Assembly: GCA_015680685.1 (NCBI GenBank)
Contig: MNCI01003447.1
Location: 1 to 61,945 of the forward strand
Direction: 5' to 3'
Source of the DNA: Gnetum montanum
Taxonomy: Eukaryota > Plantae > Gnetophyta
Length of the DNA stretch: 61,945 bases
Below the pieces are notes generated by a model. The model was not told the DNA's origin, searched no databases, and worked only from the letters and a program-made list of their open reading frames with translations. Positions 25,958-59,700 of the stretch are shown here, piece by piece; the first letter of the stretch is position 1; the number at the start of each line of letters is the position of its first letter. The translations under genes were made by a program, and so were the position numbers.

Positions 25958-26795
25958 TGTTGAACTGTGATATTGAGATCGCAATATCGCATTCGTGATA
26001 TCGAGTCCACGATATCGGAGCCTTCCACATGATATCAGGCATCTGATACCAGGACCTGCCTTGTTGCCTATAAATAAGAGGCAGGTGCATTTGGTTTAGC
26101 AATAGATTAGTTAGACCCTTAGCCAAACTCTTGCCTTTTCTCCCTCTTAGAGTTAGAATTATTTTTGGGTGCACGTAGTAGGAGTCATAAAGTGAACGGA
26201 TCTTTATTCAAGCATTGTGTACCTGAGCACACCTTTTGTACAACAATAAAGACAAACTTTGTGATAAACCTTGTAGCATTCAAAATAAATTAATTAATGT
26301 TAATTATTATTACTTAATTCTTTCCTTAGTTAATTAATGTTCTCTCTCTCATCCTACAACTCTCCTTAGTAAGTAGACTCAACACGACCACTTCGAGCAT
26401 GCGTGGAACACTTGGTAACCCAGTAACGATTATCGTTTGGTAATCCTAGTAGTGTGATGCTGGTTCAATATGGGTACGTTAAGTGGGAATGGATGCTAGT
26501 GTTAAGACTAGTTAGAGCATAGACAATTAGTTAAGTTAAGTTAGTTACTTAATTAGTTCACTTCTCCCTTTGTAGCACTAGGACATAAAAATATAAAAAA
26601 CTATAAAAATCATGTACATCAAGTTTACTTAACCATACAATCATGCTATACAAGTAAGCTTGGGAAGATAACAATTGATTAACCCATCCTTGTTCCACAA
26701 AGGTGCATAAGCACTTAGTCCTTGGAATTCGACCAAATCATGCATGGATGCTTGTATTCATATGATTGAGCATAGGGATACCTCTCCACTCATCA
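25958..26795 (+). repeat. 3' LTR of element B
   Basis: Preceded by the PPT-like TGGGGGTA; ends CACTCATCA followed by the target-site duplication. Confidence 0.9.
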
Positions 26796-35413: not shown

Positions 35414-38055
35414 AATCTTTGCCATGAAGCTGACACATGGAAAAACTAAAAAGGATGTTTCTTATAAAGCCATTTTCCAACCTTGTGACCTTTCTTAGTA
35501 GAGCTAATTTGATAGGGCCATCTTCCATGCTCTTTGTTGGATACGAGTTGATATGTTCACATACTTTAACTAATCCCTTTTGAATTTAGTTTGAGCTCCT
35601 TTATCCTAAAATGAGGATTTCCCTTAAAACTTAAATATTTTTTCTAATGCTAGCCCTTTTCTAAGATAAAAGTTTTCATTAAGCTCTATGAATCAATTAG
35701 CTAATGCTCTCTAGAGAATAGAAAAAATGCGTATTAGAGCCAAATTGTGAATATTATTGAATTCAAACTAAAAAACCTAGCTTCATGAATAGGCTCTATT
35801 TAGGACTTTATTTAATGCAACAAATCTTAGTCTAGCGTGAGTAAATCAAATCTTGATGTTCCATGAGCTCTTTTACATTGTAATAACCTAAAAATTATTT
35901 TTGTGCTTGCATATGCCCTTTCAATCCATGAGCTTTTACTTTTAATCTTAAATTCTGCACTTCATTCAAACTACAACTCTTACCAAACTTGGATTTAAGC
36001 TTTATGAACTTAAAATCATAATTAGAACCTAGTATTTTCATTCAATTAATTATAAGCCTTGAATTATTATAAAATATAAGGTACCTTTCTTATTGACATA
36101 TTAAGCTTATAAAAAACTAAAAACTTTTAGCCTTGATCCATTTATGGTCAAAATGTATCAATATTAAGAATCCTTCTTTTTGAGGAAAGGTTCTTCTAAT
36201 ACCAGCATGTGTCATCCTTCTACACATTTGAAAAAGACTTTTATAGCTAGTTCTTCTTCTTTGATGATGCCATGATGAAGAGCTACCATAGGTGGCCAAT
36301 CCTTATGTTCAACAACCTACCAATTAATAGCTCTATAATGGCATATGTGATGTCACTGACTAAGAAGGTTCATGAAGAAGCTAAAGCCTTCTTGAATGTT
36401 AAAAAAAACTAACATACTTTCTCCTCATAATAAGCCTCACTACTAGTAACAATGAACTCTAGTTTATGAACCTAGAGTTATGTTTCTACTGAAGAGTCCA
36501 CAATCTTCATAAGAGTCTTCAAGTTCCTAGGTGTTGCAACTAAAGAAATTGATAACTAGAAAATTGAAAGATCTAGCATAGCAACCTCAACCCCAAATCC
36601 CTAGAGCATTTGAAATATGGAATTCAAGGTGCCCTAGATGGTTTAGAAAATCACCTAGGGACTTACAAAATGCAAAATAAGAGATTGAGAAAATAAAATG
36701 CAAAAATTATGGATCTAGAAAGCAAAAAGCAAATGCAAATTTTACACAAAATGAAACTTTAACTTTATTTAAAACAATAAAGAATGAGTTCCATAGATGT
36801 GTACAAGAGTTACCCATTTCAAAACCCATTGAAGCCAATGTGATCTACTCCACGATCAAGGTGTTGGGCCACTTCTAATGCTTTTGAACCTCCTCTACTA
36901 TAAACTACAGATCTGCAACATGGTTACTACTAGGGGTGAGATGAGTGGGAAAGTTGGCTATCAAACTACTCCACACTAGAGGTTGGGGATCCTAGAAAAG
37001 TAGCATTGAAACAAAAAATGCACAAGCCTCAGGGGGGTAAAAAAAGGGGTAATAGGGTTGTAGAGGTTCCATGTTGAGTGGCTTTAAGAAGCTATGTTTT
37101 GCAAGTGTGCAAGAGCTCTTGGAAGCCAAACTTGCTATGTGCTAAAAACTGCCAAAGTGTGCAACCTCAAATGGATGTTGGTGTTTTTATTTTACAAGTT
37201 TAGGACCATAATTTTTAGTGTAAATTGGTTGATATATTGGCTGAAAATTGTTGCAAATTTCTTCTATGTACAAGTGAGATGGGTGCCCAAATTTGGGGGT
37301 TTACTATGTATAGTAAGTGCTAAACCCCAATGGTCATTTAGTTTACTATAAATAGTAATGGGGGCATACCTTCTATGTTGGAGGCAGATCTTCTCCACTA
37401 GGCCTTCAATCTTCCATGTTGAAGTGGTTGGTCAACTTTGAAGTCATTAGAGTGTTGAAATCTTGCTCATGTTGATTCCATGTTAGAGGCATGCAGTTTC
37501 TATGTTGGGTATGGAGCCTCCATGCTAGGGGGGAAGTTTCCATGTTGAGGGGGAAGCTTCCACCCCTCCACACTAGAGGTAGGTGAGATTTACCTCCCCT
37601 GCAAGTGTTTCTAGTATAGAAAAGTGTATACCCCCATAAAACCCATCAAATTGCCATTTTTGGCATTCCAAAAGTTATTTTTGAATCTCCAAGCCCAAAT
37701 ATAGATACTAGGTGACTTTTTTCACTTGGAGAATGAGGCTTTAATTAGTTATGAGGCATTTTTCAGCCTCAAAAGTATGAAATATGTGAGATTACCCACA
37801 ATGGATTATAATCTTCACATTTACACATACAATTGGTCATAATCTTTAGGTTTCATGGGGTGAAGGCTACATGATGAAAATTGGCCTTGACATACAATTG
37901 TTCATTGGTGTTTTAATGGCCCCTCTTTGTTGGTATTTAGAGGATTGACCCAAGAGGCACCAAAAAAGAACGCAAACAACCACTGCAAGTCCACCACTAA
38001 TGTTCCCTTTCTATGCTTGATCTAGTCATGTTAAACCATGCCAAAGAGTGCTTGT

Positions 38056-39506
38056 TGAAACACCGTGAAAATTTCAAGGCCTCAGCGGTTCAGCAAAAGG
38101 CTAGTGATTCAGGAAAATGGTCGCAACAAGGCACGGTGTAGCAAGTTCCTTTTCAGTTGAAGGTCTATCCTGCCCTGCTGTGCAGCATAGCACAAGCAAA
38201 TTCCAGAGGATGGAGCAAAGTGATGGATGCACGACGCAAAACTCCCAACTTCGCAAGTTATCTATTTCGAAAATCTTAACTTTTGGCAAATTACGTTGTA
38301 TTACGATGCAAAGCGTAATATCACATTGTGCAGCGTAATATCAAAGACAGTCCACCACAACATCAAGGATGGAAAACACGCAAGACTTTGATAGCCCAGT
38401 AAAAATCTCAAGGACTAACCAATAGTCTACAGTTTGACGCGCATTTCAGCGAGTTTTCTTTCCTGGTTAAGGGGCCCATTACACTGCTTTATGCAATGCA
38501 GCATGGTAAAAACCCTGAGAAAGATAGAAACAGAGGAAGCGTGGAAACAACACTTCAACTTTTGCAATTTCATTATTTTATGCTGAATTACGCTACGATG
38601 CGTAATTTAGTGTAATGCAGCGTAATTCGAGTAACGACATGCAAATCAGACATTAGTAGTTCATACGCCACAATACGCTCTCTAGCGTATTACAGCGTAA
38701 TCAAAGGACAGTCTGTTGTCAAAGCTCACACAAGGGTCGTTTACGATGCGTTACATAGCATAGCGTCGTAAGCTTTAACAAAAACACATTAAGTCAATGG
38801 CACTTTATGAGGTCAAGACACATGTCACTTAAACCACATTTTTCTCCTGACCCTGACCTTATAAATGCTCTAGTTGACAAAGATAGGGGGCTTGCAAAAA
38901 TTTTTCTTTCAAGGTTGGCAAGAGAGCAAAAGAGAATCAGTGATCGTGAGAATTTTAGAGGTGATTGATAAGAATTCTTGATCAGAAACAACTAGCTACC
39001 AGATATTCTCCCAAGGGTCTAACTTCCTTGCACCCAAATTCGCTAGATCAAGGTAGATTGATCTTTGCTTATTTCATCTTTACATCATTTTCTCATTACT
39101 GGCATATGCTTCGTCCAAACCAAAGCCCACCTGAAGCCATTGTATCAAACATATTGTTTTTTTATAAATTAAATCCCAGATCTCATGATCGTATTATTTA
39201 CCAAATTTGATCTCCTGCATCCTAGTTAGACGAATTTGGCAATCTTATCTAAATTGTTTGTATTATCTTCAATTGCTTTCGAGATTAAAAATATTGCATC
39301 ACATTATAAAGAATCTTTATTTCGTCATCAAAATACTACAAAACCTTTTACTAATTAAATAAGTCCCTGTCTGATCAGCAAGATCGTTCAGGGCACCCCA
39401 AATTTTTTTTTCTCTCCAGCACGGTCCTCGCATGGATCCAGGGTTAGAACTGTGTATGTGAACTTTCGTTCGGTATTTCCAGCGATTGACATTTTTTGTC
39501 GTTATA
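38056..39506 (+). repeat. 5' LTR of element C
   Basis: TGAAACAC...GTTATA (terminal CA mutated to TA); direct repeat of 54254-55709; TATAAA near 38860. Confidence 0.93.
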
Positions 39507-39512
39507 GTTTTC

Positions 39513-39529
39513 TGGCGCTAGAAGGAGGG
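39513..39529 (+). other. tRNA-Asn primer binding site
   Basis: TGGCGCTAGAAGGAGGG is complementary to the plant cytosolic tRNA-Asn(GUU) 3' end CCCUCCUUCUAGCG-CCA (recalled sequence). Confidence 0.85.
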
Positions 39530-39756
39530 TCACATATCCAATCCATATTTTACAGGTAGCCTTGTAAGCTAACTGTACCCATTGTCAATCAACATAAACG
39601 TAATACCTCCGAGGTTGTTTACGAAATTGTGCAGTGCAGATTAGTTGCATCGACGATTCCTTTGGAATCTTATGAGATAGAAAGCCTCGATTGTTACTTT
39701 GCCTTTGTCCTTCCAATCTCCACTTTTATTGTCATTATCTTCAAATCACATAAAAA

Positions 39757-42700
39757 ATGACTACTTTAACTACTGTCGTCAACACCGCTAGTCTTGAAAA
39801 CCCTTGGACCATGCAAGTCATGCCTCCCATGGTCGAGCAACCACTTAGTTCGGTGCAACCACACCGCTCCCTCAGGCTACAAAACAAAGAGGCTGAGGGA
39901 CAAGCTCAATGGAGGGAAAGCTAAAATTTCCTCTATGCTAAGTTAGTGACAAACCTACCTATGTACCCACAAGAGCTCGAGGAAAAACGAGAGTACGAGC
40001 TCATGTACTGCAATGGGAAAGAACTCATTCCTACGCCTACCACTTTCATACCTTTGATAGATCAACAAAGGTGGATCCTAGATCAAATATTAATGGCACA
40101 GACATCACCAAAAGAACTAAAGTCTTTGTTCCATAATGAAACGCTTCACGATGGATAAGATGATCTAGAATCCCACTTTGAGGGAGGCAGTCATGCCGAT
40201 TTCACCANCAGAATCCCACTCTGAGGGAGGCAGTCATGCCGATTTCACCATGGCCCCTCCCTCCACAACATCTCGTGTAAACCCGTTGTTCATGGTCACC
40301 ACACCTTTGACATTATCTAACACTGATCGAGTTCCACATTCACCACATTTACATTTTCTCTCACTTACTATCTTCCCAGGTGAAGGTCCATCACAGATTA
40401 TTCCTCAGCAGGTGCGATTGCCTAAATCGCCACATCATGTGCCCGCGCCTGTGCCACCGCATGTGCATGCAATACCCGCAACGCCAACTACGCTCCCCCT
40501 TCACATGACAAGGCGTACCACCACAGCATGGTGGGCTCCCAACATATCTCTTGTTGCGCATTCTGCGCAAATGCACCACCATCCCCACCTTCAGGGACAC
40601 GTCCCGCAAGCGCTAAACCTAGTTACAGGGCCATTGCCTGTGCCTTCGGCTACACAGACAACGTATCCAATAGCGCAGCCGATGGTGGTTCCCCCAGCTG
40701 CACCAACCACCAGATGGTGGATGCCACAAGCAACACTGCCTGCAGGGACTATCCCGCCAACCATCGACCAAGATGTTGCCCCTGTGTTGCCACCCAATAT
40801 GGCTCCCCCTTCCACCCCACAAATGACATCGTCGTGTATGGGTCTGGACCAAGATTTCTAGCTAATTTAGACCCTTACAAAGGAGGTCAGGCATCTCAAG
40901 GCTGCTAGCTCTAACAAGGTACAAGTCATGGATTTCTACCATGACGATCCTATTAGCCCAGCAGTCCCAATCTTGTCGTTGCCACCTGGGATGCTCCTTT
41001 CCCATTTCACAAAATACAATGGGGAAGGTGATCCCAACGCCCACCTCATCACTTTTAGGTCAGAGTCCATATTGCTTCAACAATGGCCACATACCATAAT
41101 CCATGTATTTGCTATGTCCTTAATGAGTAAAGCTTTGGATTGGTATCGAGCACTTCCATGCACTTCCATTTCAACTTTGGAAGAGCTATTAACCCAATTT
41201 GTGACTCGCTTCAAATACAACCTGAAGTCAGAAGTCACACTAGACCAGCTCATGGGAGTTAAGAAAGATTTGCTCGAGTTAGTCCAAAAGTTCATACAGT
41301 AGTGGAGTGCAACCTTGAACAAAATCTATGAACCCATCGTGGAGGCCCATCTACCGGCAATCAAGGGAGCAGTCAACGACTTTATCAAGTCTAAGCTGTA
41401 TTACCTCATCCCCCATTCCCTAAGCCAATCCTTTACTTAGACTAAGAGCATCTAAGACACGGTGGAGGCTAGTAAAGATCCGGCATATGTGGCCTACAAA
41501 AACACCCATAGCAAGGGTAAGGACAAAGGCAAAGTCATGACGACTACAGTCACGGCGGTTGCTGAAGGAGCCAAGAAAGAGAACAGCAATGGAAAGAAAA
41601 CTATCGTGGAGCCAACTAAGCCAACAACCAGCTCAGGTGGCACCAATCAAGAAGCTACTTTTGCCCCTGAAACATCTCCACAATCAAGGTCAAAATTTGA
41701 GCGTAAGGACTGCTCAAATTACGTAACTCTACCTATGAAGCCTTCAGAACTTTTGAAGAAATTATTGGGAACTGGCCACATCCAACACAAGGCAGTGTTC
41801 GAGGAGGCTCTAAAATTTCACAGGTCCACTGTGAGTTACTCAAGAATCCCTCCTTGGCCCAACCTAATGAACCGCCTGTGCCCAAGAACTTTAAGCTAGA
41901 CCGATTCTGTGACTACCATCAATTGTGCAGTCATGACACAGACTACTGCTGGGCATTGAAGGATGACATCCAACATCTGATAGATCAAGGTGACTTGATC
42001 TTAGATAGCAGTAGCCTGACACACCCAGAAAACTAGGCCATGCATGTGTACCATGATCCGTTGAATGCAAACAATGCAGGGTACACAATCAACGTGGTAA
42101 GAATAGAGGGTGAGAATCAGGCACAGTCGAGACAATCTTTTGTATTACGAATGCAATCTCACTTGATCCAAGAAATAGGTCTGTCAGTGCCGACGAGTGG
42201 CACTCCAAGGCACCCTTTCATCCTTTGAACTGCATCTCAGAATGTTGCCCGATAGCCTGCAGTCGTTAAAGCCACGGCCTAGCCCGTGCCTACACCCAAG
42301 GCACCCTTAGTCATTAGAGTGCCAAAACTATCAACCGCCCCTCCTACGTAGGGGCAATCTTCCAAGTTAAACCGTCCTACTGTCACTGTTGATGCAACCA
42401 AGGGCCCTCTTATGTTGGGGTTACCCAAACCTCAACCCCTCACTTCTGCACCTTTCACCCCACTTGTCAAAAACAAAGAGGTTACATGAAAGCAATTATC
42501 TCCTCCAGGCCAAAGGAAGTGTAACCCTTGGCCAAATGTCACTCCTCCCCACGAAATTTGCCTCCTAGGGTGAATGGAAGAGGAAAGGGATGACAAACAA
42601 CTTGATCGTGGGCAAGATCTCTTTGATGCCCTAGCACAAGTCAAATAGGCTTTGAAACAAAAAAATACAACATTGAGCCTTTATGACTTGCTCATGACGT

Positions 42701-43494
42701 CACAAACACATCATGAGACTATGGTTCGCATGCTAACGTCCATACCTATGGATGAAAGCCTGCCAGTAGACAAAGAAGCAATCCACTCTATCATGCTTCC
42801 ACCTGTTGCTAAAAAACCAGATCCCACCCCGTTGACCTTTCATGATGAATCCATTAAGGACAATCCTGAGGGTCAAGTGACAACAGCATCCATGTTCATC
42901 ACCATCTAGGTTGGCCAACACCAAATCCAGAGAGTACATGTAGATGACGGGGTGGCCACTAATGTCATCCCTTATCCCATAGTGGATAAATTAGGCTTGA
43001 TCGATCAGATCAGTCCTACAATGACGTCATGCCTAAAGTCGTTCAACGGGACATAGGTGCAAGTCAAAGGGACTGTCCATATCAACTTTGTGGTAGGGGA
43101 CCAGTTCCCCATAGATGCTACATTTATCATGGTTGAGGAAATGCCTGGATTCAATTTGATTCTTGGGAGGTCTTGGTTAGCCCAACTAAGAGCAGTTTCG
43201 TCACCCATTCATCAGGAAATCCATTTGCCTTATGTAGGAGGAGAAGTGGTTATCCGCGGGGATGAAATAACCCCATAGGCTATTAATAACATAGAGACAG
43301 AACAAGGATCGGAGATTGAAATGCCTGAGAATCCATCCCCTGTCCAAGTACCCGAGCAAGTTGAAACAGTGGCTGATGACGGCTTGACTTGGGCTGAACT
43401 ACCGTTCCCGGAGGAAGATTGCAATGCGAAGGGGGAGGGTCATAAATCTCCCCATCCTTATGCGTTGTTGAAAATCAAAGCAATTAAGAAATAG
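39757..43494 (+). pseudogene. gag: Decayed gag-protease of element C
   Basis: Pro-rich N-terminus; FTKYNGEGDPNAHL..ALDWY..ISTLEELLTQFVTRF; Tat-type zinc knuckle CDYHQLCSHDTDYC; protease RVHVDDGVATNVI..FNLILGRSWL. Confidence 0.9.
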
Positions 43495-43671
43495 TTACAG
43501 AGTTAGCAATGTTGCCTAATTTATACGGTCTCATCATCCATTCTATTTATGCTTATTGTTTATACTGCTTATGTTTACGCATGTGCTTACGCTTTCCACT
43601 AGCTAATCTCGTTACGCTCATGTTTATCTTTGTGTTTGGCTTTACGTTTCTATTTTCTTTACTCCTATGAA

Positions 43672-44202
43672 AAGGCCCAAAATGGCCTTAAACTAGCAAC
43701 CTTATCTACACTTCTCACCCAAATTATGCAAAGGCCCGAAATGGCCCTAAACTAGCGACTTCATTTACGCATGGCACCTGAATCAGCTACGGCCCAAAAT
43801 GGCCTTAAACTAGAAATTTCATTTACTCTTTGTATCTAAATCCAATTTCATTCATGATTTATACTAGAATCCAATTTACGCTTACTCTCTTCATACCTTA
43901 AACTATCCAAGGCCCGAAACAACCTTAAACTATCTAGGGCCCAAAACGGCCTTAAACTATACAAGGCCTGAAATGGCCTTAACCTATCCAGGGCCCGAAA
44001 TGGCCTTAAACTAGCAATTTCTTTTACACTCGGTACTCAAATTTCCTTTACTCTCTGTACCAGAAATTTTCCTTAAACTACTAAAAAAGAGCCTAAAACA
44101 GCCTTAAACTATACAAGGCTAGAAATGGCCTTAAACTAGCAATGTCACTTATGCTTTACATTTAGACAATTTAATAGCCCGCAATGGCTTCAAACTAGTA
44201 AT
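43672..44202 (+). repeat. Repeat array in the PR-RT spacer (GGCCCRAAATGGCCTTAAACTA, about 10 copies)
   Basis: Units spaced about 58 bp at first, then about 27 bp. Confidence 0.85.
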
Positions 44203-44394
44203 CACATTGACGCTACGTTTTTAAAACTAATCACAATTTATCATAACATTAAAACCTATGGAACGCTTTACATAAAGAGAAAACAACAAAAAGAACATTA
44301 ACGTTAACACCGAAATCTATTTCAATATGTTAAAAGAAAGAAATATAGTCTCTTGTCTCATTACACCACAATAAAGCACCAAGTTAATTTATTA

Positions 44395-47300
44395 CACATC
44401 CCCCTTACCATCACTATCTCCTATATCCCCTAGTTCAACCTCTACTCTGAGGAGGTCATCCTCATAGAGGCCACCCTTTGCATGAGGAACCCCTTCATAA
44501 GGACGATCCTCTTCGTGGGACCCTTCAATATGCTCTATTTCCTGTAAACCCTCTTCATGAGGATCACCACCTTCGTTAGCTTCATCCTATCGAGGAATTT
44601 CCTGAAGTCATTCCTACGATCAGACATGGTATATAGATTAACATCTTCATCAAAACTAGGTATAACGAAAACGTGATAATACTGCAACTTAACTGTGATG
44701 GTCCCGCCTCAGCAGCAAAGGGGACTTACTCTAAGCCGATCCATAGATGACACATGATTTTGTCCTCGGTAAGCTCAGACCAAACCCTATCCCCTAGATT
44801 GGTTCCAGCCTTGACCTTCCCCTTCTCCACGGGAGTCCATCAGGGTGGTTCAAGGAAGAAAGAAGGGATAGTAGTCTCACCTCCAGGAAGAGTCACTTCC
44901 CTTTCTAGAGAGGCACTCACTGTCACTTGCTCATGGAACTTTTCAAATGCCTAGAAAGCACCAATAACGTTGAGAAATAGTCAAAGGGATTGAGCCTCAA
45001 CAGTAGAGTCCCTATAATGTTGATGATAGGCTACACTTTCTCGTTTGTAGACTTGTTTATGATCTTTTTGCGTCTGCCCCCACTCTTGAATACTCGTGCT
45101 AAAGTCCTTCCAGTCCTGGTTCTTCTGAGCAAGGAGGTCCATTTGCATATGCTGTTCAACCAGTTCACGACTAGTTTGGACACTATTCCTAACGAAAGCC
45201 CAAAAACGAGCATAGTCAACGATAGCTGTCCTCCAGTCCTCACTTCCCATCCCTTGAGCTTGTAGAAATTCATTCCGTGATCTTAGATCCCCGACCTCAT
45301 CGCGTAGAGCCACTCTCTCCTTCTCCAACCTCTGCAATCTCTTCCAGAGATCCTCGTTTACACCTTGACATTCCCATAAGGAGCGAGTTGAGCGTAAAGC
45401 ACATTTATGCATCTCATCGTAAATGTTGTACAGCAGGACGGTCACTTTTGATGAGGGCTTGGCGGTGTCTAAATCGATAGGCTCTGACGGGTCCCATTTG
45501 AGGCAAGATCCTAATAACATGAAAATAACGGTTAGGCATAATTAAGTAGCATAATGACACAGTAAAAAAACCTCTGCATAATGATTGCAGCATACCAGCT
45601 TTAGGATCGATTCGCTCTAAGAGACCGATCATATCTTGAATGACCCCTTCCGTAAAGGTGAATCTATCAAGAAATTCACCCCAGGATTGAGTCACCACCG
45701 CTGTTAAGGGCACGCTCTGTTCACCTGTTATGTAGGATAAAAGGTATGATTGAGACATTGTGACAACTAGTACAAAATAAAAATTAATTTTATCAGGCGA
45801 CAAACCACTTGCCTCGGTTAATTCCAGCCGAAAGGACTTCGGCATCTTCCATAGCTATTTCCTCTTCATGCGCAAGAGGCTGTGCACTCCTTGCTTTATT
45901 AACTGGGACCTCTTCTTTCGAGACAGAGGCCCCTTCTCCACACTGTAAGATCATAGCCCCTGTATCAGGGGTCAACCGGTCTGCAACCTTTTCCCTCGCG
46001 GTTATACAACATGACTAGTTAACATAAGATTTCACTTTTATTCAAAAAATGTTACACTACAGTCTCTACGCAAATCATAACCACTAACACATTTGGACAC
46101 ATACCGCCTGGAAGAATACTCTGCTGGAACCTGATTTTCATCTTTTTCTTAATACCACCCACTGGCTCGGTAGATCCCTCATTTAAACGAGGCTTTTTTT
46201 GTGGCACTGACGAATCCACTATCTTAGCAGCCAAGTGCTTCCCCCTCAACACATCAATAGTGTAAGAGGGGGACACTCCACCCACACTGTCTTGGCCTCA
46301 TGTTCGAGGTGCCGCCATACTCCTAGTCGTTACCGACAACGACTCCCCGATCCCCTTAGGAGGGTCTTGTGACCAGATAGTGCTGAAAATATGGGAGATC
46401 CATGGTTTAGAGATCTAGCTGCAATCTTATTGCACCCAGACCCCATTCCTCTAGACCACCAGAAATTCGACAAAATGCTGGAAGCAAGCTATGAAGAAAG
46501 CAAAATGCATGCTGAAATGAGTTTCAAGCTTCTGGAGAAGCCTGACCATCTCAACACACAAGCCTTTGGCAAAGTAGCTTACCCAATTGAATCGTGTCCC
46601 CTCCTCTAAGACCTCTCGCATAATTCAAGCCTGCTCAATGGTGAGGAATCTCCCTTGCGAGAGTGTCTTGGGGAAGGCTTGGGCCCAAAAAAAGGGGTAA
46701 ATGGTATGGGCCACCTCTAACTCAATCCTATCGCCAGGGATCCCCTTAGTTTCTTTCTAAACTCCCAGCCACCCCTCTATCTCTTTTTGGAATTTGGAGC
46801 TCCTCTTCAACTTCTCATATATGGGAAAATCATTGGAGGGGACCCCAAAGAGATCAGAAAACAGTTGAGCGTCAATGTCAAAATTTACGCACACATTACG
46901 TACGTGTACACAGAGATGCTCGGCTTCCTCGCTAAAGGAGTTGACCAGGGTTAACATTTCACCTATAGTGGCATCAGGAATTATGGCCAAGAAAAGGTCC
47001 ATCAGTCCAGCTTCCCGAATGTTATTGGTTACTACAATTGGGGACGCTCTATGGCCGAGCCAACGTTCTGCCTCATTTATGTCGCCATAAAAAAAGAAGA
47101 GACTGCTGGCCTCGTGACCCGAAGCCATGATCATAATCTCTCATGATTCCCTGAATATTAACACGAAATCTCAGTTAAACCTAGATGATTTCACATCATC
47201 ATCACACAACATTGACACAATTCATTATTATAACAAAGCTTACCAGGCCTGAAAGGTAAAGGAAATAGAGGGACTTTCCTTTGAACATCTGCCATGGTAA

Positions 47301-48581
47301 GGGGGGGAGGGGTCTAAAATCCACTTCCTATCCAGCCATCCGAGCTTCTTGCACCTAGAAAAGAAGTTGGCATAACGGGTAGGGTATTCTGGGATCTCAA
47401 ATGCTAGATGTCCCATGATGGCAGCCCACACGTTGCTGATAGAGGTAAACTCCCTTATAGCACTCTCGGCCAACGACAATGTATCATTATTTTCCATAAG
47501 ACCGCTTTCATTGATAAAAAACCTATGCTAGAAAGATAAACAACTCTTTACGCTCAAACAGTAGTTAGCATTACAATACTATGAAGTGAAACGAAAACTT
47601 ACCTACCTGCGTAATGCACGGTACCACGTGGATTCTGGAAATAAGTTGTGGGATGATGGACCATGAATAGAGTGTTATAGGTGTGATAACAATTAAACCT
47701 GGGCATTTCCTAGATCCAGTTTAAATGCCTTAAACCTTTGACATTCTATTCATAGTCTTGCACCTGCACAATTTCAATCTTGTCGTCTGAAAGAAACGCT
47801 AGGATGCTCTGCATCGAACCGACCAATAACATCTCTAAAATAGCTACAGCCTCATCACCTGGTAGATGTGACCAGACGATTATGCTATAGTTGCGAAGTA
47901 GAAATTGCACAAACTCTCGTGCACCTCTTCAGAACCACACCGCCTCCTTTAGACGAGCATGAGGAGGAGGAACATTGGCTGTGGGGCCATGAATGCAGCA
48001 CAGAACCCCCATGATGTCCAAAACGATTAGGACGGGCTTTAGCATAATACTGTAGAATACAAATGTGCTACTGTTAGACAAAATCTAGACATGAATATTT
48101 GTTACGCCACACTAGGGCTTGAACTATTCCTAGAAAATTACAACGTATACTGGAGGCGCATAGCCAAAATCATCTAAATCCTTGTAACAGCTCAAGGTCA
48201 GTCTCTGAGGACGGCGATGAAGGCAAATACTGCGTATTACTCCAATGCAATACATAATTATTACAAAACTCTGATTACATTACATCTATACACTATACAT
48301 TATCTCTGTGCAACATTATTCCTTATCACCTAAACCATCATAACAATATTTTAGTTCATACAAATAGACATTAACACCTGACCAACATAAGAACTCAAAA
48401 TATAGAAACCACAACACTGCAACAAACATGACAATAGCATAAAAGGGTGAACAACAACTTACCGGTTAAGTGGAGTAACTTCCAGAGCTTCTACTATGGC
48501 CTGTGAAATCCACTACAAACTCTCCTGCATCTCGTCAATCCTGGCCAACTTAGTGTTCTTTCCTTTAACCTTGGGTGCCAT
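44395..48581 (-). pseudogene. Antisense multi-exon cargo gene: FCP1/SCP (NIF) HAD phosphatase-like domain, PMD/Transposase_32-like domain, coiled coil and probable acidic tail
   Basis: Exons 48581-48463, 48049-47603, 47522-47244, 47150-46105, about 46014 or 45980 to 45813, 45724-45596, 45510-44730, and about 44613-44395. Junctions 1-3, 5 and 6 are phase-compatible; junction 4 and the frame of the last exon are unresolved. Internal stops are TGA/TAG/TAA of the deamination type, without frameshifts. Confidence 0.8.
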
Positions 48582-48711
48582 TGTTGCAAAAGTCGCAATT
48601 GAACAGAGTCCTCGTGAAATCCTTTGCTCACGCCTTACTCACGCTCTCTTCTCACTATAGCCAGGTTTGAATTCGTGATATCGGTAACCTGTTTTGAGTA
48701 TGAACCACTGG

Positions 48712-48719
48712 TTTATAAA
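48712..48719 (-). promoter_or_regulatory. Candidate TATA box of the antisense cargo gene (copy C)
   Basis: TTTATAAA about 130 nt upstream of the ATG at 48581; conserved with copy A. Confidence 0.45.
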
Positions 48720-49166
48720 TGAAATGCTCAAAACCAACTGATTCTTTCCACCCGATCGACGAGGAACTTTCCCAAAATGAGGGTGTCAGTATGACATAAA
48801 ATGTGAAGATATGGGCATTAATGCCACAAATATCATGTAAGTTGTGGTTCAAAATGACCCTAAACTAATGCAATGCTCATCACCTCGTAATTTAGCCGCA
48901 TTAACTACAGTTTGTGCGAAATACAAATCCAACCATTTTGACACGCTAGACGCACCACGTTGCACCTCTCATCTCATTTCATATGCTAGCATCTGGGAAG
49001 CTTAGCTCAGCATTTCTTTTTACAAACTATTTGTAACGGTCCACTAAGACCTTAAACTGGAAACTTATCTAGCATGCAATTCTGACACAAAAACAAAAAA
49101 AAATTTATCATTTAACAGATTGGCGAAAGAACTATGGAACAACTTCTATTTTTGGCGATTTTGCAG

Positions 49167-52100
49167 GATTACTAGCAAATGGACACAGCTTTATCCACAC
49201 CCTTAGCCTTAACAGGGCCACATGGGAAGGTCATTAGACAGTACGATCACATGCTAGTAGGAACAAATCCTTCCATTTATGACGCAACCATAGGAACATT
49301 GGGAACATCCCCAGACTGGCCAGAACATCTAACCTGAACACTTGACCTGGAGGCTAGTGATGTAACCAAGGACCCTCTCAGTGAGATCCTTGTGGTTACG
49401 CACAAGGGTGAAAATAAAAATCTTAGGGTTAGTTCTCTCCTAGATCAACAGATGCAGAGTGACATAACCCAAGTGCTCCAAAACAACACTGTTGTGTTCG
49501 CGTGGTCATATGAAGAAATGTCAGGTTTAAACCCAAGATTAATACAACACAATATAATCTTAGACCCACACATCAAACCAATTAGACAGAAGGCACAAAA
49601 GATTAAGCCGAAAATTGCGCTAGCAGTGCGTAATGAAATCACCAAGTTGTATCAGGCTGGTTTCATTGGCATGGTTGATTACTCAAATTGGGTGTCCAAC
49701 ATCGTGGTTGTCTCTAAGAAAATGGGAGGCATACGCATTTGCATAGACTTTTGGGATCTGAACAAAGCTACAATTAAGGACAACTTCCCGTTACCGAGTA
49801 TCGACCAACTGATCGACACAATAGCTAGCCATGCGCTCCTGTCCTTTATGGATGGTTTTTCAGGTTATAATCAAATTCATATTAACCCAGAGCACCAATT
49901 GACCACAACATTCATGACACCCTGTGGGACCTTCTACTACATCATGATGCCTTTCGGGTTAAAAAATGTTGAAGCAACATATCAACGGGCCATGACATAC
50001 ATCTTTAGCAATTATCTCTTAGGGAGATTGAACGACTATGTAGATGACATAGCTGTCAAGTCTATAAAGTTATAAGATCATTTAGAAGACCTAGAGTTAG
50101 TCCTTAAATGATGTCTCAAACATGAATTATGGCTCAACCTAAAGAAATGCATGTTCGGAGTCAAAACCGGATGCATGTTGGGGTTTGTGGTATCAGAGAC
50201 TAGCATCCGAGTCAACCTTGACAAGGTTAAAGCCATCGTCGATTTAATGCCACCAAAAAATCTCAAAGAATTACGTGGGTTACAAGGTAGGCTTCAGTTC
50301 ATCAGGCGGTTCATTTCAAAGTTAACAGATAAATTGCACCCCATGCAACATCTTCTGAAGAAGGGTGTCAATTTTGAATGGACCGATGACTACCAACGTG
50401 CGTTTGATAATTTGAAAGAAGATCTGCAACATTTACCGACAGTTTTCCCACCACAAAGGGATCAGCCTTTCTACATTTATCTAGCTAACTCGGACGTATC
50501 CATAGCTGCGTTACTGTGCCAAAAAAGGAACGATGGGTTAGAAGCACCTATCTATTACCTTAGTCATGCTCTATTTGCGTATGAAACAAGATACAATGAA
50601 GTGGAGCGTAACTATTTGGCATTAGTTTTTGCACTAAAAAAATGTAGGCATTATCTTTTCCACATTCAGGACAACATAATTTGTAAAAGTAACGTTTTGC
50701 GGGCTATCTCCAACAATTTGTATGAAAGTAGTAGGATAGCTTGTTGGAAATCTATCACAGCTGAGTTTGATTTACATTATGTTGGTCAATCATTCACCAA
50801 AGGCCAAGTCATAACTGACCAATTAGCAACATCACCGATTAACAACCAAGCTATAATAGAGCCAGAATTCCTGGATGAACATGTACATAGTTTAAGCCCT
50901 GTGTCAACAGGCATTGAAGCAATGTTATACTTCGATGGAGCTTCAACCACTAGGGGTGGCAGTGCCACCACCGTTGTTACACTTACCCCTGAGGATGTGC
51001 ATCCATTGGCTTACTGCCTGACATTCCCTTGTACAAACAATGTGGCAGAGTATGAGGGACTCCTCAGAGGGTTGTTGACAGCTAAAGAACTTAACGTTCA
51101 ACACCTGGCAATCCGAGGCGATTCGATGGTGGTCATCAATCAAATCACAAAAGTCTACGCCTGTAAAGGTGTGCATCTGCAGCCCTATTGCGATATGGCT
51201 AAAGATCTCCTAAAGCAATTTGTGATGATTGATGCCCAACACGTGCCACGCAACGAAAACGTTGTTGCCGATGCACTGGCAACGCTGGCACTAAATGTGC
51301 CACCACACTTTTTTGCCACTTGACTCGCCTTAATGATAGAATGTATAGAGCCTATCATTCAAGTAGTGTAGATTTCTTCATTAGACATGGGAGGAATGCC
51401 AGAATGGTATGAAAACATTAAAACTTACCTCCTTCATGGAAAACCACCGCACGAGCTAACGCATGCACAAAAGGATGCGATGTGCAAGCATGCTAGGCAA
51501 TACGTCATCATTGGATACAATACTCTCTGTAGATGCTCCTTCGATGGGGTGTTACTCACCTGCGTCAATAATGATCAAGCACAGCGAATAGTTAGCGAGG
51601 TCCATGAAGGACTGTGTGGGGGACATGTAGCCCTGCGAGCCATGGCCGCTAAGATCAGATGCCTAGGGTACTATTGGCCGTACATGGAAAAAGACTGCCT
51701 TGCCAAGGTTAAGACGTGTGATACATGCTGGTGTTATGCAAATCTAATACACGTGTCACCAACTGAGTTACACACTACACAGATCTCTTGGTCATTCCAA
51801 CGATGGGGACAGGACATCATAGGCCCCATCGCACCCAAATATTCTGCAGGACATAGCTTCATTATCATTGCCACCAAATATTTCACGAAGTGGGTCAAGG
51901 CTATCCTCCTATGGAGGATTACATCTCAACAAGTTTGTCATTTCATCTTAGACAATATTGTAACCAGATTTGGACTCTCTATGACTATTTTGATTGACAA
52001 CANCGTGCTACTAAATTGTGGTCTGTTGTCAATCACAATAGTCATAGAGAGTCCAAATCTGGTTACAATATNTTGATTGACAACAGACCACAATTTAGTA

Positions 52101-52729
52101 GCACGAAAACCAAATATTTTTGCAATAATCTTGGTATCAAGCAATATTTTTCTTCATCTTATTACCCGCAAGCAAATGGTCAAGTAGAGGTAACAAACAA
52201 GGTGATTATCAATTTACTCAAGAAGATGCTCAACAGTAATAAGAAGTAGTGGCATGAAAAAATCCTTTATGTGCTATGGGCATATCATACGACGTGCAGA
52301 ACAGCCACAGATAGGATGCCCTACAGCCTGGTCTACGAATCTGAAGTAGTGTTGCCCTTGGAATTACAGGTCTCCTCATTACGGATGGTCCTATCCATGG
52401 TTATAAATGAGACTCAACACAATGAGTCTAGAATTATGGATTTAGACTCAGTGGAGGAGAAACGTATCCAGATGCTCGACACAATCAAAAAATATCAGGA
52501 TTAACAGAGATCGAAGCATTAGCACAACCTGCATCAATGACCAATAGAGAAAGGAGACCTAGTTCTCAAAGCCATTCGTGAACCAGTAGGTAAGTTCTTT
52601 ACAAACTGGGAAGGCCCTTTCCTGGTCATTGGTGCATATGGCAACGGAGCATTCAAGTTAGCAGACACTGACGGCAACGAACTAAAAAATCTAATGAATC
52701 ATTTGTACCTAAAGCGGTATTACATCTGA
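49167..52729 (+). pseudogene. pol: Decayed pol (RT, RNase H, archaeal-type RNase H, integrase) of element C
   Basis: WVSNIVVVSKK..IDFWDLNKA..FMDGFSGYNQI..MPFGLKN..YVDD; aRH MLYFDGAS..TNNVAEYEGL..GDS..ADALA; integrase VHEGLCGGH..YYPQANGQVEVTNK. In frame from the acceptor TTTTGCAG at 49166. Confidence 0.95.
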
Positions 52730-52759
52730 ACACTGACTTAGCTTAAAATCAGGTAACAA

Positions 52760-53080
52760 ACGTCCACTACGATGTAAAACTGGCAAAGTTGTACATGTCC
52801 GCTACGACGTAAAACTAGCAGCTTTTGCACGCATCTGCCAAGATGCTAAATTGGCAAGGTAAGCACACATATGCTAAGACAAAACCAGCATAGACTTGTC
52901 CCTGGGTCATGATGTAAAACTGACACCCACATCACGGTCTTCTAGGACTATAAACTAGCTCTTCCACCATCTGCTACGACATAAAACTAGCAGGTTCCAG
53001 TCCGCCTAGATGTTAAACCGAGACCACGGTCTTCTGAGACTTAAAGCTAGCAACAATGGTTAACCAGGACCCAAAACTGG
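52760..53080 (+). repeat. Tandem repeats downstream of pol (CTACGAYGTAAAACTRGCA)
   Basis: Multiple degenerate copies; homologous to 5480-5800. Confidence 0.75.
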
Positions 53081-54240
53081 ACTCCATCAGGTCATCCATG
53101 AAGCAAGCAAGCATGACCATTCTTGCACTGCATCCCTACCAGATGGAGCGGGTAAGGCGTTGGAACAAACGTAACGTTGTTACCCCATCGATATCGTGCT
53201 GATTCCTCGAATATGCCAAAAGGCATAGTACTAACCTCTCGGAGATATATCTATGATAGCCACTTCGTAGTTGCAGCTCCTAGGATTAGTTTCACCGCTT
53301 GGTGCCTTGAAAAAATCGTGGCCACCCACCATCTTAGTGGCCTCCATCCATCGCCATCATCAGATTTTGGCTTAGCAGATTCATCTGACTTGTTCTTTGC
53401 ACCGTCCTTCGAGCGAGATGAATCTAGTTACCGACGACAACTTCAGGAACCGCGGCATCAACATTGGCACCCTTGCCGCTTGCTGCTGTTCCAGTTTCAA
53501 AAGCCTCTCTCCTTAGCGATCTGGACGTTTACTTCTGGCTTTCTGTTCTATGTTGTGTTTTGCAGGTTACTTGCTACGAAGGCGTTGATCGAGAATACCT
53601 TCATTGGAAGGTGAGGTGTTATGGCATTCTGATGTGGCTGCTCAGACTAGTCTGGTCACTTGGAAGTGCAAACCCTGTCTCTCCCTCCATCACGTACCTT
53701 ACCATGTTTTTCCCCTTTTTCCCTATCCTTATAATTGTCCCTGTTTTCTTCTCCGCTTGTGCAGAACATGAGCATTAAGTTGATCAGTTTTCATTATTAT
53801 GTCTACAAGCTGGCGTAACACATCTTGCCTTGTGGCATGCAATCTACATTTTTCAAAAAAATGCAAGGGGTAATACTTGGCAAAATGGATGTAAAACAAC
53901 TTGTCCAGGCCATGCAAGTGTAACACAACTCATCCTTGCAAATCCCCCCTCCCCCTTCATATGTAGTATGCCGACGTAACCTTTCAAAAACACATTAGCA
54001 AAAGGCCGTAATGACTTGTTTGAAGAAGTTTCATGATTCATGTGTTTGAGTCTTCCCTGAACCTACCATCTCTAACCCCTATAAGATCCCTTCTATACCA
54101 TGTGGCCCTCCATCCTCGCACTTCTAAGTTTGACAAAACAACATTCGAGCGGTCTCCAACACACATTGTTGATGCTTTTTCCTTTCCAGTGTTTCGTATT
54201 CTTTGTCGACGTCTTTTGGGCAAGTCCTCTAAACATCAAC

Positions 54241-54250
54241 AAAGAGGGGC
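54241..54250 (+). other. Polypurine tract, element C
   Basis: AAAGAGGGGC lies 3 nt before the 3' LTR. Confidence 0.82.
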
Positions 54251-54253
54251 CAT

Positions 54254-55709
54254 TGAAACACTGTGAAAATTTCAAGGCCTCGGCGGTTCTGCAAAAGGCT
54301 GGTGATTCAGGCGAAGGGTTGCAACAAGGTGTGGCACAGTAAGCTCCTTTTCAGTTGAAGGTTTGTCCCACCCCACTGCGCAGCACAACATAAGCAAATT
54401 CCAGAGGATCGAGCAAAGTGACGAATGCACGGTGGCAAAACTCCCAACTTCGCAAGTTATCTGTTTCGAAAATCTTAACTTTTGGCAAATTACATTGTAT
54501 TAGGCTACAAAGCATAATATCACATTGTGCAGCGTAATATCAAATACAGTCCACAACAACATCAAGGATGGCAAACACGCAAGACTTCGATAGCCCAGTA
54601 AAAATCTCAAGGACTAAGCAACAGTCTGTAGTTTGATGCACATTTCAACAGGTTTTCTTTCCTGGTTAAAGGGCCCATTACACTGCTTTACACAGTGCAG
54701 CATGGTAAAAACCCCGAGAAAGATAGAAATAGAGGAAGCATGGCAACAACACTTCAACTTTTGCTGTTTCGTTATTTTACGCTGAATTACGCTATGATGC
54801 GTAATTCAGCGTAATGCAGCATAATTCAAGTAATGACATGCAAATTAGACATCAGTAGTTCATACGCAACAATACACTCTCTAACGTATTACAACATAAT
54901 CAAAGGACAGTCTATTGTCAAAGCTCACACGAGGGTAGTTTACGACTCGTTACGCAGCATAGCATCGTAAGCTTTAACAACAACACATTAAGTCAACGAC
55001 ACTTTATGAGGTCAGGAAAAACGTCACTTAAACCATGTTTTTCTCTTGACCCTGACCTTATAAATGCTCCAGTTGATGAAGATCATAGGAGGCTAGCAAA
55101 AATTTTTCTTTCAAGGTTGGCAAGAGAGCAAAAGAGAATCAGCGATCATGAGAATGTCGAAGGTGATTGACAAGAATTCTTGATCAGAAACAATCGGCTA
55201 CCGGATATTCTCCCAAGGGTCTAACTTCCTTGCACCCAGATTGGCTAGATCAAGGTAGATTGATCCTCGCTTGTTTCATCTTTGTATCATTTTCTCATTA
55301 CTGGCATATGCTTCGTCCAAACCGAAGCCCGCCTGAAGTCATTGTATCAAACATATTATTTTTTTTATAAATTAAATCCCAGATCTCGTGATCGTATTAT
55401 TTACCAAATCTGATCTCCTGCATCCTAGTTAGACGGATTTGGCAATCTTATCTAAATCATTTGTATTATCTTCAATTGCTTTCGGGATTAAAAATATTGC
55501 ATCACTTTATAAAGAATCTTCATTTCACCATCAAATTACTACAAAACCTTTTAGTGATTAAATAAGTCCTTGTCTGATCAGCAAGACCGTTCAGGGCACC
55601 CTAGATTTGTTTTTCTCTCCAGCAAGGTCCTCTCATGGATCCGGGGTTAGAACTATGTATGCAGACTTTCATTCGGTATTTCCAGCGACCGACGTTTTCT
55701 GTCATTACA
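54254..55709 (+). repeat. 3' LTR of element C
   Basis: TGAAACAC...CATTACA followed by the duplication CTTGT. Confidence 0.94.
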
Positions 55710-56759: not shown

Positions 56760-59700
56760 AATGATCAGTAGATACATGTAATATGGATTTAGATAGGAAT
56801 GATTAATCAAATTAGCTAACTCATTCACATCCATATTAGCAATATTGAATGCTTCATTTGCATAGGCTTTTGTGATAAGGAAGGACCTTCCCAATTCAGT
56901 GAGAATTTCTTTGCACACTTGCAAATGGCTTTGAGGACTAGGTCACCTTCCTTGATCTTATGCATGGTCAAGTTATGGTGATGTAGCTACATCTACCTCT
57001 CTTGATAATGTTCAACATGATCAAGCACTTGCATACATTACTCCTCCATTGAGTCTAGGACCACTCTCTATAATTCCTTGTTATGTTCATCATTGATGAA
57101 GTCAGTCAAGGCTACTTAGAGTAATGGCACCTATAATTAAAGAGGTAAAACAACTTTATAATCATAAACTAAGCTATAAGGGGTTACAAAAGTTGTCATG
57201 TGATAGGTTCTTCTATAGACCCATAGTGCATGGACAAGCTGATCATGCCATTTGTGCTTGCTGTTATTAAGCATCTTATTGAGCAAGTTGATGATGGCCT
57301 TATTGCTTACTTCTGCATGTCCATTGGCTTGAAGGTAATAAGATGATGAAAAGGAATGCTTAATTCCTAGGTCATGATAGAAATATTTGGTTTTTTGGCT
57401 ACTAAATTATGGTCCATTGTCTATAACTATGATCATGGGTATGAAAAAATGGGCGAAAATGTTATCCAAGATAAATTTGTAGACTTTTTTAGATGTAGTC
57501 TTCTTTAGGGGAATAGCTTTAACCCACTTAGTAAAGTATTTGGTTATGGTGATGATAAAGCTATGCCCTACAGAAGACATAGGCATTATAGGTTCAATGA
57601 TATCTAACCCTCATCATTAAAATAGCCAAGTGATCTAAGTAGTATGCAACTCAGTTGATGATACATGTATAAGGTTTTTATGCCATTGGAATGTGTCATA
57701 ATGTTTAACCTTCTATAGGGAGTTACTTTTCATATGGGGCTAGTAATATCCTAACCATCTAATCTTAGTGACCATAGCTCTAGGTCCTATATATCCTCCA
57801 CAAATGCCTTCATGAACCTCCTCTAGGACTATTTTGGCTTCAATTTTACCCAAGCACTTCAACAATAGACCATCATAGGATCATTAACATAATGTGTTCT
57901 CACCTATGATGACATATTACTTTGATCTTTTGCATATAACATCCCTTTGAGCAATAGTTAGGCCTTGTGAAGATTCACCATGCATAAGGAAAAATTTGAT
58001 ATCATCATACCACTCCCTGGAAGGAGTAGTATGAAGTACAACCACAAAGGTATTCTTAGCATTATGCACAATGGGGATAACATAGTCCATGGTTAAGGTG
58101 GGCAACTTAGTAGACACATCTAATGTCACATTGAGGGCCAATGTTATTATTTTATTGGCTATGACATTTTTATTTTGGGGTATGTGTTAGATATCAATGT
58201 CTACAAACTGTTGTAACAATTACTTCCCTAGGTCAAGTAAGGTTCTAAATGTTTGGCTTTACATGCATAGACCTTGGTCACTTGGTTGATCACAAATTGG
58301 GAAATGCCTTTGATCATTAAGTATCTAATTCCTAGTTCATTATCTACCATCATCCCTCTGATCAAACCCTCATACTCTGCTATGTTGTTAGTACATGGAA
58401 ACTTAAAATGATAGGAGAAGGATCAATTTTCACTAGATGGGAATGTTATGATGGTAGTGGCACTAGCCTAATGGGCAGTTGAAGCTCTATCAAAGTGCAT
58501 GACCACCTCATAACCATCAAGCACTTGGCTAATGGTGTTTATGTGTTCATTAGGAAATTTAGGATCTATGGTTGCTTGGTCATCAATAGGTAAAACTATG
58601 AGTTATATGACTATATCTTGACCTTTTGTTGAGGATAGAAAAATGTAATGAAGGTCAAACTCCATGGTTATGGCTTTCAATTAGGCTATTCAACTACTTT
58701 CATATATGTTGGTCATTAAGGCTCTAAGCACATTATCTTTGCAAATGACATTGACTTGGCTTCTAAAGAGGTAGTGTCTCAACTTCTTCAATGAGAAGAC
58801 TAGTGCTAGACAATACTTTTCCACTTTAGTGTATCGAGTCTTGTGGGTAACTAATGCATGGCTAAGATAGTATACTGGCATCTCTACCCCATCCTCACAT
58901 TTCTAATAGAGTAGAGAGGTAATGGATGTGTTAGAGATGGTAAGGTAGATGTAAAATAGTTTACCCTCTTGCAAAGGATAGGTCATTGGTAGTTGTGTCA
59001 ACTCTTACTTAAGGTTTTTAAAGGCCTCTTGGCATTGAGTTGTCAACTCATAGAGAACCCCTTTCTTAAGAAAGTGTTGCATGGGCTATAACTTATCCGT
59101 AATCCTAGCAATGAACCTACAAATAAACTATAATTTTCCTTGTAATCCCTAAAGTTCCTTAAGATTGATAAGCACTACTAATCTAGATATGACCTTATCT
59201 TTATCATGATCAACACGTATCCATGCTTCAAATGCTACAAAGCTAAGCATCTTACTAGTCTTAACACCAAAGAAACATTTCTTAGGATTTAGCCAAAGCA
59301 TGTGAGGCATCATTTAAGTACAAGATCTAGGTCATTAGCATGGCCATTAGCCACTTTGGAATTAATGGCTATGTCATCTACGTAATTGTTGAGCAAACCT
59401 AGCATGTAATCACTGAAGATATAGGTCATGACTCATTGATACGTTGCTCCTATATTCTTAAGGCCAAAGGGCATTATAGTATAGAAAAAGCTACTCCACG
59501 TGGTCATGAAGGTCATGCTAAGTTGATGTTCTGGTTTGATCCTAATCTAGTTATATCTCAAGAACCCATCCATAAAGGATAACAAGGCATGTCCAGCTAT
59601 AGTATCGATAAGTTGATCAATACTAGGTAAGGGAAGTCATCCTTAATAGTTGTTTTATTTAGGTGCTAGAAATCAATGCAAATATGGACACTCCCATTTC

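Follow-up and report, generated by a model that had tools for sequence, protein, structure and literature searches.

A predicted spliced antisense gene with a diverged NIF-like domain in an Ogre/Tat-type retrotransposon family of Gnetum montanum

We analyzed positions 1-61,945 of the forward strand of Gnetum montanum contig MNCI01003447.1 (assembly GCA_015680685.1), a stretch referred to here as the window. It holds a 17.7-kb long terminal repeat (LTR) retrotransposon at 38042-55707 (element B) and, beginning at the window edge, a related copy (copy A). Between the protease (PR) and the reverse transcriptase (RT) of element B, and in the opposite orientation, we find a predicted eight-exon gene, the cargo, whose second exon resembles the NIF/FCP1-homology domain of the HAD superfamily. 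The explanation that accounts best for these observations, and that we consider probable when taken as a whole, is that element B and copy A belong to one Ogre/Tat-type Ty3/gypsy family in which this antisense gene is resident, that exons 1-3 have been under selection, that exon 2 encodes a diverged NIF domain, and that the product would be a non-catalytic accessory factor.

Structure of the antisense gene

The gene occupies positions 48581 to 44395 of the minus strand, which confirms the location between protease and RT given in a preliminary description made from the sequence alone. Canonical splice sites define eight exons, and exons 1-7 are joined by GT-AG sites and one GC-AG site into a single reading frame of 983 codons. 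The proposal in that description that minus-strand exons splice into one frame thus holds for exons 1-7, with exon 8 ambiguous; its translation of exon 2 is exact, and its suggestion that introns and stops had hidden the gene from a track of open reading frames (ORFs) is supported.

Exon 1 (48463-48581, minus strand as for all exons; 39 codons) begins with the ATG at 48581, encodes a Lys-rich N-terminus, contains one stop in element B and ends at a GTAAGT donor. The core of the NIF/FCP1-homology domain, with HAD motifs I-IV, is encoded by exon 2 (47603-48049), which has three in-frame stops in element B. Exon 3 (47244-47522; 92 codons) is free of stops in element B and belongs to no recognizable family. 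Across a 93-nt intron it continues in frame into exon 4 (46105-47150; 348 codons, 7 stops), which would encode an unknown domain. Exon 5 (45813-45980) and exon 6 (45596-45724) follow in frame without stops, and exon 7 (44730-45510; 259 codons, 3 stops), also in frame, appears coiled-coil-like, with weak Pfam matches, some of them to coiled-coil families. The frame of exon 8 (44395-44613), which would encode an acidic tail, is ambiguous: the spliced phase stops at 44537-44535, and a 64-codon open frame in another phase reaches 44395.

Of the seven donors, six start with GT and that of intron 5, downstream of exon 5, is GCAAGT; every acceptor is an AG preceded by a pyrimidine- or AT-rich tract. 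The introns, 80-413 nt long, contain 59-70% A+T, compared with 53% in the exons. Stops are rarest in the predicted frame in every exon, amounting to 14 in 983 codons overall, and are 2-8 times more numerous in the other frames. A candidate TATA box (TATAAA, 48712-48717, minus strand) lies about 130 nt upstream of the ATG; the 18-nt block that contains it does not differ between copy A and element B. An AATAAA at 44393-44388 overlaps the terminal stop region.

Similarity of exon 2 to the NIF family

Profile comparisons confirmed, insofar as sequence similarity can identify it, that exon 2 encodes a diverged NIF/FCP1-homology (HAD) domain of the LLVLDLNG-type branch. Searches were run exon by exon, and the exon 2 stops were read as X in the profile alignments. 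For a profile of the branch itself, LLVLDLNGLL was back-translated and metagenome contigs were scanned, yielding 71 ORFs that match a NIF hidden Markov model (HMM) built here; a non-redundant 22 of these, all recognized as NIF by Pfam, constitute the subfamily profile. Exon 2 aligns to this profile over 137 columns with an hhalign probability of 97.2% (P 3.5e-11, score 71.8, z 21). Its three stop-free pieces are colinear, matching template positions 183-196, 227-272 and 300-332 with P values of 0.026, 1.7e-5 and 2.3e-4, respectively. Run on the six-frame translation of the window, the subfamily HMM found two significant places only, exon 2 of copy A (27.8 bits, covering 388-699) and exon 2 of element B (23.8 bits). 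The earlier assignment to an LLVLD(I/L)NGLL-type subfamily is therefore right for exon 2.

A second NIF profile was derived from viral contigs, in which the pattern L-DLDETL-[VI]H led to 35 full ORFs, 30 of them Pfam NIF. When aligned to this profile end to end, exon 2 of copies A and B covers each of the four HAD motifs, with a global hhalign score of 28.0 versus 2.1 +/- 2.1 for 120 column shuffles (z 12.6) and a local score of 32.0 versus 12.3 +/- 2.6 for shuffles. As a control, 20 other real ORF segments of the element reach at most 8.6 globally and 17.4 locally. The viral HMM gave marginal scores on the six-frame window, 1.5 and -3.1 bits, and these fell on the two exon 2 copies. In a protein language-model atlas, all 30 matches of a 60-residue exon 2 piece were to NIF (PF03031) clusters (score 0.93, 200 of 256 shared features), and a 36-residue piece gave no usable match.

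Conventional searches with single pieces were silent. Pfam hmmscan of ten stop-free minus-strand pieces found no NIF, plant mobile domain (PMD) or TRP28 (PF04195) match, and the exon 2 pieces, which are short (38-60 residues), did not match NIF (PF03031) even at E<=10. Three exon 2 pieces searched with phmmer against the PDB returned nothing at E<=10, and word-indexed protein searches returned nothing for the exon 2 profile, an exon 3 piece or a 127-residue exon 4 piece. A HMMER pass of the 60-residue exon 2 profile over 1.84 billion representatives matched one bacterial repeat protein only, in seven repeated stretches, which we take to be spurious.

The FCP1/SCP-like HAD domain had been placed in exons 2-3. 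This stands for exon 2 and fails for exon 3, which has no similarity to the C-terminal part of either NIF profile; in the comparison of exons 2-3 with PF03031, Pfam was silent on the short pieces and the NIF profiles built here match exon 2 only. No relatives of exons 3-8 were detectable by Pfam on pieces or by protein searches with the exon 3 piece and the 127-residue exon 4 piece. We also considered exon 4 as a PMD (PF10536) or Transposase_32 domain and found no support for this, its pieces of 127, 43, 57 and 81 residues being without a Pfam match at E<=10, a result with which remote similarity is compatible.

The LLVLDLNG-type NIF genes of the metagenome contigs often occur as two neighboring paralogues per contig, in tandem or divergent arrangement (L045, L048, L061, L064, L076, L084, L088, L102, L108, L111, L113, L115 and L116), and 2 of the 22 subfamily representatives also carry a Methyltransf_16 lysine methyltransferase domain.

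Active site residues

Invariant residues of the subfamily are the D-L-N-G of motif I, the motif II Ser, the motif III Lys and, for motif IV, D(D)SPYK...NP. In the cargo, motif I still has its first Asp and its Gly, and motif II its Ser; motif III has a basic residue, Arg, and the flanking NTL and NP are retained. The motif I Asn is lost, replaced by Met in element B and Val in copy A, and motif I accordingly conforms to neither DxDxT nor D-L-N-G. Also lost is the Asp pair of motif IV, which reads Val-His in element B and Ala-Cys in copy A, together with the Tyr and Lys that follow it. The cargo domain is probably a pseudo-phosphatase. Because subfamily-invariant residues, including both motif IV aspartates, have been lost, a catalytic role as a carboxy-terminal domain (CTD) phosphatase is unlikely, and the action on the RNA polymerase II CTD suggested in the preliminary description is speculative.

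Selection on exons 1-3

Copy A is colinear with positions 47277-55660 of element B, from the antisense block through the 3' LTR, at about 75-86% identity. Exons 1-3 of the antisense gene lie at its very start (1-1413, minus strand) and the rest of the copy extends to about 8240; over the cargo the two copies are about 80% identical. We estimated the ratio of nonsynonymous to synonymous substitution rates (dN/dS) by the Nei-Gojobori method from this one pair of copies, over exons 1-3.

With dS at about 0.9, dN/dS in the predicted frame is 0.12, 0.15 and 0.15 for exons 1, 2 and 3, and 0.18, 0.15 and 0.16 for RT, RNase H (RH) and integrase (INT) in the same pair; exons 1-3 are conserved as strictly as pol. 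Other frames have dN/dS values of about 1, except for the mirror frame on the opposite strand (0.16-0.25), which is low, as in the RT control, because the wobble position is shared. In exon 2 the mirror frame contains more stops than the predicted frame, and in exon 3, where the mirror frame is indistinguishable on these measures, the strand rests on the splice sites.

The differences between the copies fall on the three codon positions as 42/34/91 (chi-square p = 2e-8), the same pattern as in pol, and are flat by codon position in the introns and the upstream region. Indels in exons 1-2, such as a 3-nt in-frame indel in exon 1, comprise whole codons, and intron 1 is full of odd-length indels. 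Purifying selection therefore acted on the antisense frame, at the level of the protein, for most of the time over which A and B diverged. The gene had been described earlier as captured and retained in an accessory role; its retention under purifying selection is supported, and it belongs to the element family. The cargo may plausibly have been captured from a host gene. Both copies in the window are old, dead and inactivated by stops.

A candidate sense-strand intron

The end of PR and RT are 5.8 kb apart in element B, and a candidate Ogre-type intron on the plus strand (43348-49166) encloses the whole antisense gene. Its acceptor, TTTTGCAG/G at 49166 (49159-49175), is identical in copy A (about 1989-2005), and the RT frame opens directly behind it. 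With the GT at 43348 as donor, the PR frame would continue in phase into that of RT. The conserved acceptor and the in-phase junction suggest a 5.8-kb Ogre-type intron between PR and RT.

We propose that the PR-RT spacer was expanded to 5.8 kb by housing the resident gene. In the antisense orientation, the introns of this gene would not be splice substrates in the genomic RNA and would be copied at every retrotransposition, and its location inside the presumed sense intron would remove it from the spliced pol mRNA. The product would combine a non-catalytic phosphatase-like binding module with an unknown 350-residue region and a coiled-coil tail. Such a protein may serve as an accessory factor of the element; its most plausible mode of action would be to bind or sequester a nuclear phosphoprotein partner.

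This proposal can be taken further, into a joint scheme that we regard as unlikely in its entirety. The dead NIF/FCP1-type module would then engage the CTD-phosphatase or silencing machinery of the host in trans, as a decoy or adaptor, and the element would thereby encode its own counter-silencing or transcription factor; the antisense-in-sense-intron layout would have evolved so that an intron-bearing gene spares pol translation; and the stops shared by the two copies would perhaps be tolerated or recoded.

RNA-seq reads

Four raw-read RNA-seq runs were mapped to 43300-49299, with a depth of at most 2. The reads are mostly partial and come from diverged relatives and from a tandem repeat, and no indexed RNA run contains the stretch. 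The tandem repeat array (43667-44170; 27- and 59-nt units with the core GGCCCRAAATGGCCTTAAACTAG), located between the end of PR and the 3' end of the antisense gene, is the best-covered part, its reads deriving from related units elsewhere, being partial, with loose ends and a 147-nt skip. Five reads of run X4 match only 48014-48045, the first 32 nt of the coding part of exon 2, and continue on both sides into diverged homologous sequence. This pattern suggests that a diverged relative of the cargo, at the start of exon 2, is transcribed somewhere in the genome.

In-frame stops and alternative explanations

Several observations weigh against a resident, selected antisense gene. One is the distribution of in-frame stops. 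In pol (943 codons) element B has 6 stops and copy A has 11, none of the 17 being common to both. In exons 1-3 (264 codons) there are 4 stops in B and 5 in A, and two of them, both in exon 2, coincide exactly between the copies (47931-47929 and 47748-47746 on the minus strand of B, about 658-660 and 475-477 in copy A). Two stops common to both copies are a poor fit with long purifying selection, and if inherited they are hard to reconcile with a dN/dS of 0.15. Repeated deamination of methylated, hypermutable sites could be their source but is, by rough estimate, improbable. Gene conversion was rejected as a source, there being no unusually long tract of identity around the stops. Over exons 1-7 of element B the stop density is 1.4%, about twice the 0.64% of pol.

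Other objections concern the reach of the evidence. Pfam, PDB and billion-scale protein searches gave no relative of any piece; selection was measured only for exons 1-3 and from two copies; and the function of the cargo is entirely inferred. RNA-seq showed none of the seven antisense junctions and no sense splice, at a depth of at most 2 and with copies that are silent or dead, an outcome that neither supports nor refutes the expression model.

The alternative that survives best is a neutral passenger, in which a fragment of a host NIF-family gene was picked up and is decaying with no role for the element. It would account for in-frame stops in both copies, including the shared pair, for a stop density about twice that of pol and for the missing expression evidence in RNA-seq. 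We nevertheless hold it to be improbable, since a decaying fragment does not explain a dN/dS of 0.12-0.15 at a dS of about 0.9, the same as in pol, or the whole-codon indels of exons 1-2 and the excess of third-position substitutions. Moreover, once the two shared stops are set aside, the density of private stops in exons 1-3 equals that of pol.

Somewhat less probable again is an active, atypical phosphatase, which would retain the nucleophile Asp together with the motif II Ser and rely on substitute residues for catalysis. Both copies do have the leading Asp of motif I and the motif II Ser, and in each a basic residue stands at motif III. However, the two motif IV aspartates are conserved in both Pfam-verified NIF alignments, and A and B have different replacements for them; the Asn, Tyr and Lys that do not vary in the subfamily are gone as well.

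The selected product might also be an antisense RNA, regulating the element through double-stranded RNA or small interfering RNA, rather than a protein. A regulatory role has been proposed for retrotransposon antisense transcripts (PMC7264820), and the in-frame stops common to both copies also speak for this reading. Yet the constraint is codon-periodic and specific to one frame, and the exons retain family-specific NIF residues, which together argue for selection on a protein and leave the RNA very improbable.

Finally, an independent nested insertion, in which another mobile element or gene landed in one copy and is not borne by the family, is hardly credible: the 5.8 kb do look foreign, with their opposite orientation and their own tandem repeat array, but copy A carries the same exons at about 80% identity, colinear through to RT. 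We looked for termini that would mark a nested transposon and found none, the block being present in both copies with no terminal repeats, inverted or direct, at its edges; the antisense block is therefore not a private nested insertion.

Other features of element B and the window

Element B is bounded by a 5' LTR at 38042-39504 and a 3' LTR at 54240-55707 (both plus strand), which are 89% identical over a 1468-nt alignment. The gag ORFs lie at about 40.2-42.2 kb on the plus strand. The first gag-region ORFs are separated from the 5' LTR by some 0.5-0.7 kb (39505-40170), a distance that leaves no room for the usual Ogre 5' extra ORF. The protease region (42930-43275, plus strand), at the end of the gag-PR frame, was assigned from retropepsin-like motifs (VDDG..., ILGRSWL) read in the ORF translations and has no Pfam match. 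RT, RNase H, a second, archaeal-type RNase H (aRH) and integrase follow at 49392-52500 (plus strand) and are recognized by Pfam as RVT_1, RT_RNaseH_2, RVT_3, Integrase_H2C2 and rve. Within this region, the ORF at 50151-51320 contains RT_RNaseH_2 followed by RVT_3, and integrase lies downstream, placing the aRH between RH and INT.

Elsewhere in the window, a pair of 300-nt direct repeats (17052-17351 and 25996-26295) with 89% identity and 8.9 kb apart probably represents the LTRs of another element; ORFs of 150-199 residues and a gap of 356 N lie between them. A 210-nt inverted repeat (52076-52285 and 57215-57424) is 72% complementary, and just past the 3' LTR of element B lies an inverted fragment akin to its integrase region.

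Comparison with known systems

A second RNase H between RH and INT is the mark of the angiosperm Ogre and Retand branches of the Tat clade (PMC6317226). In Ogre elements, gag-PR and RT-RH-INT are split by a spliced intron with an average length of 274 bp, and an extra ORF upstream of gag often has a PMD, 57% of Ogre elements having a 5' PMD ORF (PMC6317226). The Gnetum family resembles Ogre in the aRH between RH and INT (a trait also found in Retand), in having gag-PR and RT-RH-INT as separate ORFs and a conserved 3' splice site where the RT frame begins, and in its large internal region. It differs in that the Ogre spacer is non-coding and averages 274 bp, whereas here it measures 5.8 kb and holds a gene; in addition, no PMD match was found among the pieces tested, and only about 0.5-0.7 kb separate LTR and gag.

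Compared with other LLVLDLNG-type NIF proteins, the cargo is colinear over 137 columns and through HAD motifs I-IV, sharing LD.xG, an RP-type motif followed by EF, VWS, L..LxxxW and NTL......NP. Unlike them, its pieces fall below Pfam detection, the Asn of motif I, the Asp-Asp of motif IV, the Tyr and the Lys are lost, and the domain would sit inside a multi-domain protein of about 1,000 codons encoded by a transposon.

A conceptual parallel is provided by MAIN and MAIL1, PMD proteins derived from transposable elements (TEs) that pair with the phosphatase-like PP7L and act in TE silencing, and by the PMD-PP7 fusion, MAIL3, that occurs in some species (PMC7156037). There, too, a module related to transposons and a domain of a phosphatase family come together in the regulation of plant TEs and genes. 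However, PP7 is a PPP-family metallophosphatase and not a HAD/NIF protein, these are host genes, and no PMD is demonstrated here. Orchid Ty3/gypsy elements are reported to have acquired an N6-methyladenosine (m6A) demethylase domain (PMC9289625), an earlier case of an additional enzyme-family domain becoming fixed in a plant Ty3/gypsy lineage, although of a different family. In full-text literature searches, no paper was found that connects NIF or CTD-phosphatase domains with the cargo of LTR retrotransposons, and no description of the arrangement seen here was encountered.

Close counterparts are found in Retand/Tat elements (Grande gene23, RIRE2, Retand), whose additional antisense ORFs lie between pol and the 3' LTR and mostly encode TRP28/PF04195 (PMC7264820, PMC11963269). 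According to a 2020 review, no clear database similarity had been described for any Retand/Tat extra ORF (PMC7264820). Like these, the Gnetum cargo would be a family-wide antisense gene in a Tat-clade element, of unknown and suspected regulatory function (PMC7264820, PMC11963269). An extra gene that can be assigned to a defined enzyme superfamily, with measurable selection, carries a testable prediction, namely binding without catalysis. The layout indicates that a gene with seven introns can be stably maintained in a retroelement when it is placed antisense, apparently within an intron of the element itself. Should there be an intact copy that is expressed, it would offer a direct experimental handle on the accessory genes of giant plant retrotransposons, for example in transcription or escape from silencing. 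The Retand/Tat antisense ORFs have been described as plain ORFs, whereas the gene reported here lies between PR and RT, has seven introns and encodes a NIF-like domain; its position, its spliced structure and its assignable domain are what is new relative to the known antisense extra ORFs.

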